From: Prasinococcaceae sp. CCMP 1430
Taxonomy: Eukaryota > Plantae > Prasinodermophyta
Length of the DNA stretch: 64,000 bases
NCBI GenBank assembly: GCA_013416795.1
Contig: RQSC01000028.1
Location: forward strand, 404,534-468,533
Direction of reading: 5' to 3'
The notes beneath the pieces are model-generated. The model was not told the DNA's origin. It worked only from the letters and a program-made list of their open reading frames with translations, and made no database searches. Position 1 is the first letter of the stretch; every line of letters starts with the position of its first letter. Both the position numbers and the translations under genes were made by a program. Below are positions 43,102-50,813 of the stretch, in pieces.

Positions 43102-44950
43102 TCACTCGCCGGTCCAGCGCTTGATGAGCACCGCGCTGTTATGCCCTCCGAAGCCGAAGCTGTTTGACAGCGCCACGTCCACCTCGTGGTCCTCCGCCGC
43201 GTCCTTGCCCACAAGCAGCCCCAGGTCGACAGCGTCCTCAGGTTCCTCCAGATTAGGGTTGGGGTGAAGCTTGCCAGTCACGCACGCCTGCACCGTCGCC
43301 ACAGCCTCAACGGCGCCCGCCGCGCCCAGCAGATGGCCCACCATCGCCTGCAGGCGCAGATTCGTACGTACAAGTGGGATGCAAGCGCGTGGCGTGCATT
43401 GGTGCAGGGAGTGCGGGGAGGAAGGAGGGCAGACAGGCGCAGGCAACAGGAGCGCCGAGCGGTTAGCGCACACGCGGATTTCATGTCGAGGCGAAGCGCT
43501 CGGGTGCGCGGATCAGCAAGGACGTGGACCCCTACGCCCATTCGCAAGACGCGTCCGCGCCTTGCCCGGAGCGCTCGCATTGCTCCCACCCGCCACAGCA
43601 CGAGCGCTCTCTCGCTGACCTTGGTGCCGTTGATCTTGAGGTCGTCGTTGTCCCCGAAGATTTCCACGATAGCATTGTACTCGGCCAGATCGCCGGCGGG
43701 TGTGGACGTAGCGTGCGCATTAATGTAGTTGACGCGACCAGCGTCAATGCCCGCCCTCTCGAGTGCGAGCTGCATGCAGCGCTTCACCCCTTTCCCCTCT
43801 GGGTGCGGCTCGGTCATGTGGTGCGCGTCGCAGGTCATGGCCCCTCCCAGGAACTCGGCGTAGATGGTGGCGCCTCGCGCCCTCGCGTGCTCGAGCTCTT
43901 CCATGACGAGCACGCCAGCACCCTCGCCCATGACAAAGCCGTCGCGCGTCTTGTCCCACGGACGGCTCGCGGTCGTCGGCTCCTCATTGCGCTGCGACAG
44001 CGCCTTGCACGCCGAGAATCCCGCCATACCCATCGGCACGATGGCCGCGTCAGCTCCGCCCGCAAGCATGACGTCCGCCTCGCCGCGCTGGATGTAGTCA
44101 TACGAGTTCATCATGCAGTAGTTGGCGGTCGCGCACGCGGTGCTCAGTGAGTAGTTGGGCCCCATGAAGCCGACATCCATGGCGAGCAGCGCACCGCTCA
44201 TGTTGGTTATGGAGAAGGGGATGCAGAACGGGTTCATCCGCTTGCCATGCACGGTCAGGTCGGCGCACGCGTCGGCGAACGTCTTCATGCCACCCATCGC
44301 GCTGCCCACCAAAATACCCGCGCGCGAAGCATCGAGCGCGTCGCGCGCGTCCCCCGACAGCAGACCCGCGTCGTCGAGCGCGTCCTTGCCCGCCACGAGC
44401 GTGTACTTGATCACGTCGTCCACGCGGCGCGCCTGCTTCTTGCTGATGCGCGCCGAGGTGTCCAGCTCCTTCACCTCCGCTGCGAATCGCGTCGGGAGCT
44501 CACCGGCGTCGAAGTGCGAGATCTCACGCACGCCGCTCACACCCGCGCATAAGCTGTCGTAGAACTCGTCCACACTATTGCCCACCTGCGATCGCACGCG
44601 CAGAAGACGCGCGCATGGGAGCGCATGAGAGAGCGAGGGTGAGTGTGCGCACGCGCAGGCGGTAGCGCGCGCGTGGGCACATGCTCGTGGTCCCAGGAGG
44701 GCACATGAGAGAGCACGGATGGGCACAGGCGCACGTGCGCGCGCTGCGATGAGTTGCGCGGGTATGTGCGCACGAGCGCGAACGAGCTCGAAGGGTCCGC
44801 GCGGGCTGTGCCACGATCACGCACCGGTGACACCACGCCCATGCCCGTGATCACCACGCGACGTCTGCCCTCGGCATCGCCCGCGGGCGCCTGGCACGCG
44901 CGCGCTGTGCGCCTCCGCTCTCCCGGCGCGGTGCGCGGTGCGCGCCGCGC
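43102..44950 (-). CDS. KASII: Plastid beta-ketoacyl-ACP synthase II (FabF-type); exons ~44950-44825, 44585-43620, 43347-43102; no in-frame ATG found
   Basis: RRVVITGMGVVSP|VGN, GSAMGGMK, MNPFCIPF, STACATANY (Cys), CDAHHMTEPH, INAHATST, SNSFGFGGHN; closer to KASII than KASI at the diagnostic positions. Confidence 0.92.
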
Positions 44951-47115
44951 AGCAGCAGTCGCAGCAGCGGCAGTTGCAGCAGCAGCAGCAGCAGTCGTCA
45001 AAGCAGCAGTTGCAGCAGCAGCAACAGCAGTCGTCACAGCTGCAGCATCCGCAACGGCAGTCGCCACCGCCGCCGCAGTCGCAGCAGCAGCAGCAGCAGC
45101 AGCCGCGGCAGCAGCAGCGCGAGCAGCGGCAGCATCCGCAGCGACCGCGCCCGTCACAGCAACATGGTGACCACCGAGGTTGCTTTAGAGGTTGCGCCGG
45201 CGATCTCTGCGTCTGCCGTGGTTGACCCTGCGGTGGCCATTTAGGATCCCCTTCCGTTGTACGCGGTGTGGTATGTTCTGGGCCTGCGGGGGAGGTTGAC
45301 GCTCTGCTCAGTGGGGCGACGTTTCCTGCGTTGGACCGAGCCAGCGGGGCGCACTCTAGTGGACACACTAGGGCCTCGCGGGCACCAAGAAGTGCAGGGG
45401 AAGCGCACTCTAGCGGACACGCTAGGGCTTCCCCCTTTACAACAATTCCAGCAGCGGTGGAGCTGCTGTGGAGCAGCTGTGGCGCTGCCCCAGATGCCTT
45501 GTCGGCCTTACCACCTTCGGTTTCTATGGCGCCTACGTCCAGTTTCTCCGTCGCTGCGCCTCTGCTGCCCGCGTGGTCGGACACCTTTGGTACGTTCTCG
45601 GATGACTGTTGTCGCCCCGTCAGCGGACGTGTCCATGTCGTGGGGCGATTCCAGCGTGACTCTTGTCGACCATGCAGTATGCCGGGCAAGGTTCATGCGT
45701 TGCTGGCTGTTAGTGCCGCGTCACCTGCACAGTGCCGTCGCCTGTCTCTGTGGCGCTTCTCGGTACGCCTGTGGCTTTCGTGGCGGCTACAAGTGCGCCG
45801 TCGGTCGACTAGGTCGCGTCGTCACGCGAGCTCGCCGCGCCGCCTACCGCTTCTGTCGCGCCGCCGTGCGATACCGTCGCGCTGTTGGCTGACTCTGTTG
45901 CGCCACCATGCGATGCTTTCGCGCCGCCGTGCGATGCTGGCTGACTCTGTCGCGCCGCCGTGCGATGCTGTCGCGCCACCATGCGATGCTGTCGCGCCGC
46001 CGTGCGATGTTGTCGCGCCGTTGGGCAAGCCTGTCGCACTACCGGGCGCGTCTCCTGTGCCGACGCGCGAGCTGGCCGGTCAGTCGCTCCCTCGCGCGGC
46101 CTTGCCGCACCACCGGCCGAGTCTACCGCGCGCCGCTGCCTGCTCTCGCTGTGCCGTGGGTCGCCCCTATGTATGCCATCGTCATCGCATGCCTGATTTT
46201 CTTGCGGATACTCTGTGTCCGCGCGGTTGAGCCGTTCCTCCAGCTCTTTGCCGGAGTGCGGTCACAACGACGGCATGGGGCTCGTCTCCTGGTCATCATC
46301 ACGTGTAGCACTTGGATTGAGCTATGTTGTACCTGCTGGTCCTGCCTCGTGCCATTCCCTGCCGGCAGACTTTATGCCAGGCAGTCAGGGATCCTGTCGA
46401 CGGGTGACGGGTAAGCCCTGCACCGATTGGTGGTGGACTAGCGTATACTTTGGCTCTCTCTGGGGAACTGGGACGTTGACTAGTTCCGTTATTGGCACGT
46501 GGGTGCGATGGGTGTCTTATTTCTACCGGGAGGCTCAGTTAAGGCGTTGAGTGGCCCCAGAGGCAACCGCGCTGGCAGGTGTACAGTGCCTGTGATTGTC
46601 GCTGCAGGAGGGCGCGGCCTGTGGTGGCTTGTATCATCTTGACTATGTCAGGACTCGTCCCTGTGTGGCGAGTTTCGGGGGAATTGGTTTTACTGGCCCG
46701 TTGGCGAACAAGGGTTGGGACATAGTACCCCTATGGTCGACTTGTGGCCGCGAGGATCAACGATCGCCTGGCTCATTAGGAATAGAACTGTGTGCTCTTT
46801 TCTGTTTGTGTGTCTTCATTTCTAGGACGGTAGGGACTACCGTCCCCCGGGGAGGGGGAGGAGTGTTGCGGACCGGCCCTGTTGTCCGGCGCAACAATGT
46901 AATAAATTGTGTATTTGGGCTTGCTTTTATAGTCCGCAGAACTTTGGGGACTTATTTGGTCCGTTAGTATAAGTTCGGGACTTTGGTAGGTAATTTGTGT
47001 GATGCGGACTGATTATTTTGGGCCTAGGATGAATTGACAAGATCTTCTAGGGGCCGGGTCGGCCCTAGGCGTCGGACAGGATCTTGTAGCAGCTGTATCT
47101 GTGGTTTCTGGAAGT
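44951..47115 (+). mobile_element. Degenerate LTR-retroelement-like 3' fragment (decayed polyQ-containing ORF, polypurine tract, start of LTR)
   Basis: One frame open 44938-46230 apart from a single TGA; 15-nt polypurine tract 46849-46863 immediately followed by TGTTG; lower GC; no RT or integrase motifs seen. Confidence 0.5.
45853..46020 (+). repeat. 21-bp minisatellite (CTGTCGCGCCRCCRTGCGATG; encodes VAPPCDA repeats)
   Basis: About 6-7 imperfect units, three in direct tandem at ~45947-46020. Confidence 0.9.
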
Positions 47116-47298
47116 GAGCAGCTTGCCGAGCACGTCATTCTCGCCACCCAAGGCCCAGAACAGGCCCGCAAGCGTGATGTCGATCGCAATCAACGTGCTG
47201 GTGAGGAACCCGACATCGGGCCCCAGCAAGCCGAAGCCGCTGTCGATGTACCGCGTGAAATCGGCCAGGAACCGGTCGATGACATTAAGGTCGTTCAT
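47116..47298 (-). pseudogene. trbL: 5' fragment (~61 codons) of bacterial P-type conjugative transfer gene trbL
   Basis: MNDLNVIDRFLADFTRYIDSGFGLLGPDVGFLTSTLIAIDITLAGLFWALGGENDVLGKLL matches the TrbL N-terminus of proteobacterial Trb/ICE systems; GAGG upstream of the ATG; homology stops abruptly. Confidence 0.85.
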
Positions 47299-49197
47299 GG
47301 CGTCGGATCCTCAAAGGGGTGCCGCAGGGCGCGGTTGCGGGGGGCGCGCACCGCGCCCTGCGGCGCTGCATGCCTGTGGCGCACGCAGCTGCGCGTCTAC
47401 GCCCTGCGCCGCCAGCCGGCCCGCCGGCCAGCGCGCGCGCCAATGATCACCATCACCCGGGGAGCGAACAGAGACAGCCCTCCCCGGAATGCGGGATTTT
47501 TGACCGGGGACACCCCACCAAGACCCGGGTTCAAGCGGCGAATCCTCGAGCCATCCACCGTGGTCGCGGCGGACGAGCTCTGATTTTGGGGTTCGGGTTG
47601 TTTTGGGTTGCGCGGGCGCCGGCGGCGGCTGCCAGGCGGGCGGCGGCGGCTGCCGCCACAGCGCGCGCGCGGACGCAGGCGGTGGGGGAGGAGCGCCGCG
47701 CGCTGTGCTGGCCAGCAGGGTTTCGGATTGGATTGCGCTCCGCGAGGCGCAGGCTGGCTGCCAAAGTAAATGCATCCGCTGGCTGGCCGTCCGATCCGGC
47801 CGGTACCGACCGACCGCCAGGTGATTCGTCTGATGCACGTGGTGATGGCAGCATATGGCGGAATGGTGTGGTTGGTGCTCCGACCGACCGATCCTGGCGG
47901 GAGCGGATGTGGATTGGGTGGGGGGCGCAACCGCCGGAAGGGGTGTTGCAGCCGCGCGCGGCTCGTGTGCGTGCATGCATGAGCAGGCTGCGGATGGGCA
48001 AATGGCAATGCGGCGGGCTCTGGCTGGCTGGCTGGCGAGCGCCCTCCCCCCCCAAACCAACCAAGCCAGCGACCGCCACAATCGACCGACCGACCGACCG
48101 GGGGAGGATGGATGGTGTGCTCGGGGCAAGGTTGAGTTAGACCGGTAGCTGCTGGTGTTGATCGACGGGCCAAACCCTGCATCCGTCCGTGCAGAAGTGC
48201 TGCTGCGCGGTCCGCCAGGCTGGGCATGCTCGGGCGGGGGCACACGCTGCGCCAGCCCCCATCCCACACCCACCGCAGCGCGGGCGGGCCATGCGCGGGG
48301 CGGGCGGATTTCGGAGGACGCACCCGGGCGTTTGATGTGCGCGTCGCATGCGCGCTGCGTGAGGGGTGCGACGCGCGCGCGCGCGGGCACCGAGGATTTC
48401 GTTTCCGCCGGGCGGATGGCGGCCACACGTTCCCGATCGCGCAGGTGCCGGCCGGGGGGCGAACGTGGGGGCGGGCGCGCCCGCGGGCGCGCCCTCCCGA
48501 CGACCATCGAATGCGGGGCTCGCGAGCGGGAGCGCGCCGGAGCGTGCGCGCGTCGACACGCGGTTTTGGATCTGCTCTCAAGAATGCGACACTACGATCG
48601 ATCGAAGCACACACGCTGCGCACGCTATCTATTATGGGTCGGCCTGAATGAAATAGGGATTTCCCTGCCCGCGTTGAAGGTTGGGCGCCGCTCGCTCTCT
48701 GCTCTCTCGATACGCGCCCCGTCCGGGGTGGTGCCGGCTGGGCGGCCGGCGTGTGCATGACGACGCGATGCGCGTGTGCATCTTGCTTGTGCCTTTTGTA
48801 CTACCCGCTGGCTGGGCAACCGGGAGCGCTCGGTCCGACTTTTCCCGTCTTTACCCCGGTCTGCGAGAGGATCGTGATCGGACTCTTCGGCGGATGCCCC
48901 ACGACCCCATCTGCGCACGCCACCGCGCGCCCACAGATGGCCTCGGCCCGGCCGACTGATGGACGTAGGCAGCAGCCATCGTAAGGCCCTCGTCGTTCGT
49001 GCGCCGCACCCCCAGCCAGTGCACGCGCGCCGTGCGGTGCGCGGCGGGTGCGGCGGAGGGGCTGTTCGCGTGCGCTGGCTGTGCGCACCGAGTCACGTCT
49101 GTGCGCGCGTGCATCAGTGCGCGTGTGTGTGCGCGTGGCGGCGGCGGCGGGGTCGGCGGTGGGCTCGGAAGAGGGCTTGGCTGAGGACTGGGCGGGT

Positions 49198-49230
<33 letters not shown>
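49198..49230 (+). repeat. Poly-G tract (~33 nt) upstream of KASIII
   Basis: Homopolymer run; length may be unreliable. Confidence 0.9.
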
Positions 49231-49231
<1 letters not shown>

Positions 49232-49309
49232 GGGGGTGTGAGCGGAAGCGGGCGGACGGCGGAGCGGGCTCGGAGAGCGCGGGTGGCCAGGTTGTCGCAG
49301 CCGATCGCG

Positions 49310-50575
49310 ATGGCGGGGCGCATGGCGCGCGCGGCGCCGCTGGCTCGCACAACGGCGGTGACAAGCCGCGGTGGCGGCTGTGCACGTGGCAGGGGAGTGG
49401 CAGCGCGCGGCGTGTCGGTGCGGCGGCGCGCGGTCGCGCGCGCAACAGCGCACCTCGCGCCGGTGAAGCTGACGGGCGTGGGCTCGGCCGTCCCCGAGGT
49501 GGTGATGACCAACGACGAGCTCGGCGAGTTTCTCGACACCTCCGACGAGTGGATCCGTCCGCGCACCGGCATCGCGCAGCGGCGGCTCCTCGGCACGGGC
49601 GAGACGATGACCGCGCTCGCGGCGGACGCTGTCGCGCACGCTCTCGAGATGTCCGGCTTGGAGGCGCACGAGCTCGACATGATCGTGCTCTGCACGTCCA
49701 CGCCCGAGGACACATTTGGTGGCGCGGCGGCCGTGCAGGCGGCGGTTGGCGCGGGCAACGCGGTAGCGTACGACCTCACCGCCGCGTGCAGCGGCTTTGT
49801 GCTCGGTCTGGTCACAGCATGCAACCACATTCGCGTCGGCGGGCCCGTGCGTCGCGTCGCCGTCATCGGCGCCGACTCGTTGTCTCGCACGCTGGACTGG
49901 GATGACCGCAGCACGGCCATCCTCTTCGGCGACGGCTGCGGCGCTGTCATCGTCGAGCGCGCTGACGATGAGGACGCTGAGTGCGCGCTCCTCGGGTACG
50001 ACATGCGCTCGGACGGCACGGGCAGTGACAACCTCCATTGCCGGTACGCCGGCGACGTGCGGGACATTGGGGCGGGGGGGGTGAGCGTGCACAACAAGGG
50101 CGAGTACAACTATCTGGCGATGAACGGGCAGGAAGTCTTCAAGTTCGCTGTGCGCGCGGTGCCACAGGTGGTGAACGGGGCGCTTGAGATGGCAGGGATG
50201 GTGAGGGCGCGGGAGGGCAGGCGCGCCGCGCGAGCTTGCCTTGCGGATGCACGCGCCGATGGCCTCGCGGAGTGCCGCGCTGACAGCTGCTGCGTGCCCA
50301 CCCTCGCGCTCTCGCAGGACGCTGAGGAGATCGACTGGCTCGTGATGCACCAGGCGAATGCGCGCATTCTGGACTCGGCGGCGAAGAAGGTTGGCATTGA
50401 TCCCGCCAAGGTCGCAAGCAACCTGGCCAAGTACGGCAACACGTCAGCCGCGTCGGTGCCGTTGGTGCTGGACGAGTACGTACGTACGGGCAAGATCAAG
50501 CCGGGAGACGTGCTGGCGACTGCGGGCTTCGGGGCCGGGCTCACCTGGGCGTCCGCCCTGGTGCGGTGGGGTTGA
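49310..50575 (+). CDS. KASIII: Plastid beta-ketoacyl-ACP synthase III (FabH); exons 49310-50200, 50318-50575
   Basis: R/A-rich transit peptide, DTSDEWI..RTGI, AACSGF (Cys), TAILFGDG, HQAN (His), YGNTSAAS (Asn), GFGAGLTW. Confidence 0.96.
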   Translation: MAGRMARAAPLARTTAVTSRGGGCARGRGVAARGVSVRRRAVARATAHLAPVKLTGVGSAVPEVVMTNDELGEFLDTSDEWIRPRTGIAQRRLLGTGETMTALAADAVAHALEMSGLEAHELDMIVLCTSTPEDTFGGAAAVQAAVGAGNAVAYDLTAACSGFVLGLVTACNHIRVGGPVRRVAVIGADSLSRTLDWDDRSTAILFGDGCGAVIVERADDEDAECALLGYDMRSDGTGSDNLHCRYAGDVRDIGAGGVSVHNKGEYNYLAMNGQEVFKFAVRAVPQVVNGALEMAGMVRAREGRRAARACLADARADGLAECRADSCCVPTLALSQDAEEIDWLVMHQANARILDSAAKKVGIDPAKVASNLAKYGNTSAASVPLVLDEYVRTGKIKPGDVLATAGFGAGLTWASALVRWG

Positions 50576-50813
50576 TGATCATATTTTCACGTAAATGGGT
50601 ATCACCTACTCGCTCTTGCATGGCTGGGCTTGAACGCTCTCGCAGTGCGCGCCATCTTTGCTGCGCTGCTGCCCCTACCACCGCGAGCGCGCGCCTGCAT
50701 AATAGAAACGATAGATCGATGCCAAGTGGTGCGTGTGGCAACATGGTGCATGGGAAACAAGTGTACTCAGTGCGGTTCATGCGCAATCAATCAGTCACTG
50801 TACGGGGGTTGCA

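Follow-up and report, generated by a model that had tools for sequence, protein, structure and literature searches.

Does the piece of a bacterial conjugation gene that lies among algal genes in this assembly record a transfer of DNA from a bacterium to the alga? The window, by which we mean the whole stretch of 64,000 nucleotides that was analysed, carries the start of trbL, as the original prediction had proposed: about 61 codons of the TrbL N-terminus with an ATG and a Shine-Dalgarno sequence, cut off after KLL. It lies on the minus strand. Reading of the open reading frames placed the ATG at 47298 and codons 1-61 down to 47116, followed after GKLL by 16 codons unrelated to TrbL and a stop at 47065; GAGGA lies 8 nt 5' of the ATG. 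The fragment and the surrounding bacterial sequence comprise the following features.

47116-47298, minus strand: trbL codons 1-61 (MNDLNVIDRF...DVLGKLL); NCBIfam NF010449, E 1.3e-26; 82-85% amino acid identity to Sphingomonadales TrbL.

47115-47367, minus strand: bacterial fragment (tile C), running from the trbJ-trbL intergenic region (past the trbJ stop) through a hairpin and the Shine-Dalgarno sequence to trbL codon 61; 100.000% identity over 253 bp to the bacterial contigs L101/L102 and L103.

47321-47364, minus strand: bacterial intergenic hairpin with a perfect 15-bp stem and a 14-nt loop (-42.6 kcal/mol); sphingomonad loci carry a hairpin at the same position.

In the NCBIfam profile search, residues 1-61 aligned to positions 1-61 of the TrbL profile NF010449 with a score of 93.8 bits, far under the whole-protein cut-off of 442, and TIGR02783 (TrbL_P) matched with an E value of 3e-5. 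A Pfam search with the 77-aa open reading frame, too short a piece, gave no match. By blastn against plasmids, matches were confined to ~47119-47302 and fell in annotated trbL genes at 70-79% identity. A full-length P-type TrbL has ~430 aa with a membrane-spanning body; here 61 of 434 codons are present, without a membrane domain. The operon context trbE-trbJ-trbL-trbF is found in the donor contigs, and no homology to TrbJ or another Trb protein was detected in 44900-48600; nor does an oriT, a relaxase or a larger piece of a conjugative element lie beside the fragment. Exact look-up did not find the chimeric 77-aa open reading frame in public contigs. The fragment has a G+C content of ~60% against ~70% in the host. 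As had also been predicted, the assembly has no N gap here and eukaryotic genes lie on both sides, with the spliced KASII gene on the left (minus strand) and KASIII on the right.

The donor was sought with a degenerate pattern for ADFTRYIDSGFGLLGPD over JGI metagenome contigs, which returned one contig, L101 (Ga0164294_10036427, JGI sample 3300013006). Window positions 47115-47367 match it at 253 of 253 bases, which sets the bacterial boundaries and confirms TrbL as the gene; L101 has a G+C content of 66% and encodes TrbE, TrbJ and a 434-aa TrbL. A Logan contig (L103, SRR24111688) likewise matches the window at 253/253 and shows 100% identity with the JGI contig across 2,531 bp. In L101/L102 and in L103, trbL continues past the point of truncation as GKLLKKILYVG. 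The identical TrbL protein occurs in three datasets (3300013006, 3300059473 and Logan SRR24111688), and the 3300059473 contig, 26.8 kb long, holds a full traG-trbBCDEJLFGI set. Among the 185,579 species genomes of GTDB, the best amino acid relatives of the fragment are from Sphingomonadales (82-85% identity), and the full-length donor gene reaches only ~72% identity with the closest species-representative loci fetched. The trbL piece is truly bacterial and derives from a Trb conjugation operon of Sphingomonadales type. Judged by these identities, the donor Trb element appears to recur widely across datasets, and the zero divergence points to present-day free bacterial DNA rather than an old insert. 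The clonality of the donor trb genes between datasets suggests that they belong either to an ICE or plasmid of very wide distribution or to a bacterium that recurs in reagents or laboratories.

We compared the locus with environmental Prasinoderma contigs, which were fetched via the KASII open reading frame product and are mostly Tara metagenome scaffolds and Logan contigs. The comparison showed that the trbL fragment, far from being a clean insertion, forms a single tile within a larger mosaic.

44970-47677, no strand: assembly-private mosaic block of 2,708 bp in place of ~343 bp of native sequence, defined by the environmental contigs and by contigs of the sequencing runs X2 and X5.

The limits of the block are exact, between 44969 and 44970 and between 47677 and 47678. 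All seven independent environmental contigs (L089, L090, L094, L097, L098, L099 and L100) have the native form: their path follows the window from 54000 to 47664, passes through 330 bp and resumes from 44969 to 42000, the fillers being nearly identical among them. Aligned over ~22 kb, these wild contigs follow the window colinearly at 95-99.5% identity, with the block as the sole large difference. In X2 and X5, one unbroken contig each puts 365 nt, the native length, between 44947 and 47678. The tiles of the block have no second copy in the window or in the KASII-locus contigs.

The native stretch has a G+C content of 84% and carries G-quadruplex motifs on both strands (e.g. GGGGGGTTGGGGGTGGGGACGGGGGAGCGGGG; L090:7754-8097). 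The native KASII 5' region is likely a trouble spot for sequencing and perhaps for replication too. Among the short-read contigs L081-L088, several stop just short of this region. The Tara scaffolds and Logan contigs L083-L100 cover window positions 33230-55324 at 95-99.5% identity and encode several KASII protein variants (P0001, P0121-P0130). Further oddities of the assembly could readily be checked against them as a population sample. A G-run of about 40 bases at 49190-49236 (window 49163-49251), where the alignments of the wild contigs break (49163/49213), is probably variable in length or poorly resolved.

At the junctions, tile C shares 22 nt with its right-hand neighbour (tile D), which in turn shares 14 nt with the native right flank; the left junction falls within a shared run of CAG. 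The size of these overlaps argues for template switching by a polymerase, or for annealing, and a chimera made by blunt ligation was rejected on these grounds. A transposon insertion was also rejected, as the block has neither a target-site duplication nor terminal repeats, and native bases were lost. A de Bruijn or polishing artefact was rejected as well, since polishers such as NextPolish and Arrow are not known to write a 2.7-kb insert from multiple sources. The loss of 343 bp and gain of 2,708 bp from several sources at one locus, with overlaps at the junctions, is the pattern of filler DNA or template switching, a pattern that does not distinguish an event in vivo from one in vitro.

The remainder of the block is made up of three pieces.

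44970-47034, plus strand: tile A+B, the end of a Q-rich open reading frame (stop at 45225), then ~1.8 kb of GT-rich sequence without open reading frame matches; delimited by the depth profile of X23.

47035-47114, no strand: 80 bases with an imperfect palindrome (CAAGATC...GATCTTG around GGCCGGGTCGGCC), by direct reading; outside the X23 coverage and the bacterial match.

47346-47691, no strand: tile D, a copy of another algal locus (~310 bp in the block), from X2/X5 contigs; overlaps tile C at 47346-47367 and the native right flank at 47678-47691.

Tile A+B contains 21-bp tandem repeats at 45792-46075 and a TGTAA motif at ~46898. In X23, a run of 2013 recorded as "RNA?" (a guessed label), depth on this tile climbs 5' to 3' from 46 to ~280 and stops near 47034, with zero depth on both flanks. 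The tile resembles a cDNA-like mRNA 3' end, from an abundant transcript. The original prediction had placed the bacterial piece next to a retroelement relic; the eukaryotic neighbour is there, and a cDNA-like transcript end describes it better than a retroelement does. Tile B is abundant in X23 in at least two sequence variants, is present at 12-27x in X1 and is almost empty in the DNA of X2 and X5; the block differs from X23 contigs by 0-1 mismatches over several hundred bases. Searches for the origin of the tile returned nothing: no protein relatives were found for a 320-aa open reading frame of tile B, no relative of the Q-rich frame among 1.84 billion representative proteins, and no exact 30-mer match for tile B in JGI metagenome or IMG/VR contigs. 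An Rfam search of 44800-47800 gave sub-threshold matches only, in the CAG repeat. Tile B (45327-47034) may come from another eukaryote in the laboratory or culture, or from an RNA element.

Tile D lies inside separate contigs of 38-40 kb in X2 and X5, at algal depth and with 2 mismatches, and in X1 it forms a 291-nt unitig (47376-47666). A bacterial upstream gene was excluded as its source: the proteins of 80 bacterial loci, TrbJ and upstream open reading frames included, had no match there, and plasmid blastn found no other bacterial homology.

The block falls at the start of KASII, and the genes on its two sides are as follows.

43278-44969, minus strand: exons of KASII (3-oxoacyl-ACP synthase II), without a start codon in the assembly; the replaced 343 bp hold the ATG and the presequence MRGAVRGTPAATPVAARRAAATAAARR...

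~49257-50594, plus strand: KASIII (FabH-type), in the colinear native right flank; the PF08545/PF08541 gene of L089, L090 and L099, mapped by alignment.

On the KASII strand, the native stretch supplies the start codon and presequence MRGAVRGTPAATPVAARRAAATAAARRAPRT..., leading into RRVVITGMGVV. P0132, a spliced environmental transcript product, reads through the presequence. The published gene model PRCOL_00000873-RA (EukProt EP00793) starts with MRGA followed directly by APAGDAEGRRRVV, that is, MRGA and then APAGDAEG. On the native sequence this start corresponds to an exon ATGCGCGGCGCG, a 120-nt GT..AG interval and an exon GCGCCCGCGGGC...; the ATG exon ATGCGCGGCGCG occurs nowhere in the window. 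Because the model is readable only from the native sequence, the annotation was made on a sequence of the native form. The 120 nt (GT..AG) that the model splices out are probably coding presequence (window 44800-44969 and L090:7754-8083). Since P0132 reads straight through the 120-nt interval, the real N-terminus of KASII is probably MRGAVRGTPAATPVAARRAAATAAARRAPRTAPGERRRTARACQAPAGD... KASII (minus) and KASIII (plus), both condensing enzymes of fatty-acid synthesis, are divergent neighbours, and every wild contig examined keeps this arrangement.

Logan contigs of four runs were placed on window positions 43800-49700 (5,901 letters); such contig depths are rough, and holes in them prove nothing. 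X1, a run of 2020 and the best holder of the stretch, had a depth of ~900 on the flanks, 12-27 on 45407-46950 and ~2 on 47149-47345, so that by these rough depths trbL stands at ~0.2% of its flanks. The X1 value of 590 at 45125-45367 was disregarded, as it averages over an 865-nt contig composed mostly of CAG repeat. The X1 unitigs break at 45367, 47376 and 47666, and among the Logan contigs, as distinct from reads, no piece spanning a junction is listed. The flanks in X2 and X5, both from 2024, have 0 and 2 mismatches to the window. X2 and X5 had trace depth on trbL (0.5 and 4.3) despite carrying the native allele only, and a bacterium with trbL or a similar gene therefore seems to accompany Prasinoderma DNA preparations, unintegrated. 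The trace of trbL in X1 may also be free bacterial DNA.

A heritable transfer would be expected at the same locus in independent samples, at a depth equal to that of its flanks and with divergence from its donor or adaptation to the host. Instead, the seven environmental contigs and two runs are native, the rough X1 depth is ~2 on trbL against ~900, and the fragment is 100% identical to its donor, with zero trbL depth in X23 (RNA label guessed). The original prediction had left a choice between a recent insertion and a chimera with a contaminant. The depth jump that it proposed to look for was found in X1, at the resolution of rough contig depths, and speaks for a contaminant chimera. The chimera is much closer to what we found, the block being missing from seven wild contigs, two runs and the sequence behind the gene model; an insertion is less probable and would be a rare event in culture.

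We conclude that trbL is not an inherited gene transfer, and hold, with a probability of roughly 55%, that the block stems from a chimeric or minority long molecule which the assembler built in; the fragment is most likely not a real feature of the Prasinoderma coloniale genome. The genome was made with PacBio Sequel reads, NextDenovo, Arrow and NextPolish, from a culture reported to be axenic and a line founded from single cells, and the raw data were deposited at CNGB only (PMC7455551). We favour a chimera because the ingredients are all in the preparations, because the bacterial tile recurs identically in unrelated datasets, because the culture was reported as axenic and because the block destroys the start of plastid KASII, a core enzyme of fatty-acid synthesis. 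A polymerase may have switched templates among the DNAs in the preparation, namely algal DNA, trace bacterial DNA and a foreign transcript or cDNA; NextDenovo would then have threaded the chimeric or minority molecule through the hard stretch of 84% G+C, and polishing would have been unable to remove it afterwards. Template switching is preferred to blunt ligation because at least three sources contributed tiles and because two junctions have overlaps, of 22 and 14 nt. The block is not a simple two-piece chimera, since both of its ends return to the same locus.

Several observations argue against a chimera, and most of them suit a real cellular event in the laboratory culture, in a minority of cells or in the reference clone, in which a break in the G-quadruplex-rich promoter was patched with cDNA, conjugative-element scrap and sequence copied from another locus. 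We regard such an event as possible and rather doubtful. Its more specific form, which we hold to be slightly less probable still, is rare and confined to a minority of CCMP1413 cells. In these, the G-quadruplex-rich KASII 5' region would have suffered a break or a stalled fork, and repair by microhomology-driven template switching or filler capture would have taken up cDNA, scrap from a conjugative element present in the cell and sequence copied from a different locus; a read from one such cell would have been assembled. Both ends of the block rejoin the same locus in the same orientation, 343 bp apart, which is unlikely for a random in vitro chimera and typical of in vivo break repair with filler DNA; two junctions have overlaps of 14-22 nt, and G-quadruplex motifs lie on both strands of the lost segment. 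The accuracy of the block (253/253 bases; 0-1 mismatches to X23) is high and suggests that more than one noisy long read stands behind it. A random bacterial fragment is seldom from a conjugation operon, the very DNA that a conjugative element would deliver, and the genome paper mentions no amplification step (PMC7455551). Against a repair event in culture, an axenic single-cell line (PMC7455551) offers no bacterial donor for a minority event after cloning, and tile B is absent from the algal DNA of X2 and X5, so that a second foreign source would be required. The trbL depth of ~0.2% of the flanks in X1 is explicable by free bacterial DNA as in X2 and X5, and the affected cells would have lost the KASII start codon.

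Were the insertion instead fixed in the sequenced single-cell clone, as a very recent heritable transfer private to that clone, with X1 derived from another stock, the gap-free assembly of the block and its high base accuracy would follow readily, and the founding of the axenic line from single cells could have fixed a private event. Every cell would then lack the KASII start codon; the project's own gene model requires the native sequence, and X1 carries the block at no more than 3% of flank depth. On account of the gene model and the X1 depth, we consider fixation in the clone improbable. An older, species-level horizontal transfer of trbL into Prasinoderma has nothing in its favour beyond the presence of the fragment in the assembly. 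The absence of the fragment from all seven environmental contigs and from X2 and X5, its 100% identity to present-day bacterial contigs and its G+C content, ~60% in a host of ~70%, all count against such a transfer; the native environmental contigs and the complete bacterial identity refute it, and we give it next to no probability. Whether the block is a chimera or was captured in culture, the trbL fragment has no function in the alga, since it holds only 61 of 434 codons, has no promoter context and has no depth in X23, whose RNA label is a guess.

Compared with known systems, the fragment agrees in its 61 residues, Shine-Dalgarno sequence and hairpin with the P-type Trb operons of Sphingomonadales (ICEs and plasmids, in which TrbL is VirB6-like), being identical to an environmental trbE-trbJ-trbL contig, and differs from them in having neither trbJ nor trbF alongside, only 61 of 434 codons and no membrane domain. 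Conjugation across kingdoms into algae is known from RP4-based transfer to diatoms. The fragment likewise comes from a Trb-type conjugative element, but without the oriT, relaxase or larger element piece there is no sign of transfer here. In the tardigrade Hypsibius controversy, apparent horizontal transfer in a eukaryote assembly reportedly derived from contaminants or chimeras. The present case is similar in that a bacterial sequence sits in a eukaryotic contig at trace depth and is missing from independent data of the same species; unlike that case, it involves a 253-bp tile in a multi-source mosaic with the same native locus on both sides, and not a whole contaminant contig or an end-to-end join. 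Filler DNA and template switching are exemplified by Ty1 cDNA capture in yeast, insertion of NUMTs and NUPTs, junk-DNA insertions in Chlamydomonas transformants and MMBIR. The block resembles these in combining a deletion with a multi-piece insertion, in its cDNA-like tile and its tile from another locus, and in its junction overlaps, whereas its tiles need bacterial DNA and a sequence missing from other Prasinoderma DNA runs, and it has no appreciable depth in the runs examined. The phenomenon belongs with contaminant-derived "HGT" in eukaryote assemblies, and its form is that of break repair with filler DNA.

The reference of a phylum-defining green alga thus holds a 2.7-kb block, false or present in a minority, which removes the start of KASII and places bacterial DNA in a nuclear chromosome. 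The genome paper itself invokes an absence of bacterial contamination from the assembly in support of one of its conclusions (PMC7455551). Screens for horizontal gene transfer, or gene models for fatty-acid synthesis, that are built on this assembly would be misled. Should the block stem from a genuine cellular event, it would offer a rare and direct look at how foreign DNA is captured at a chromosome break in an alga, and the first step of gene transfer from bacterium to alga would have been caught as it happened.
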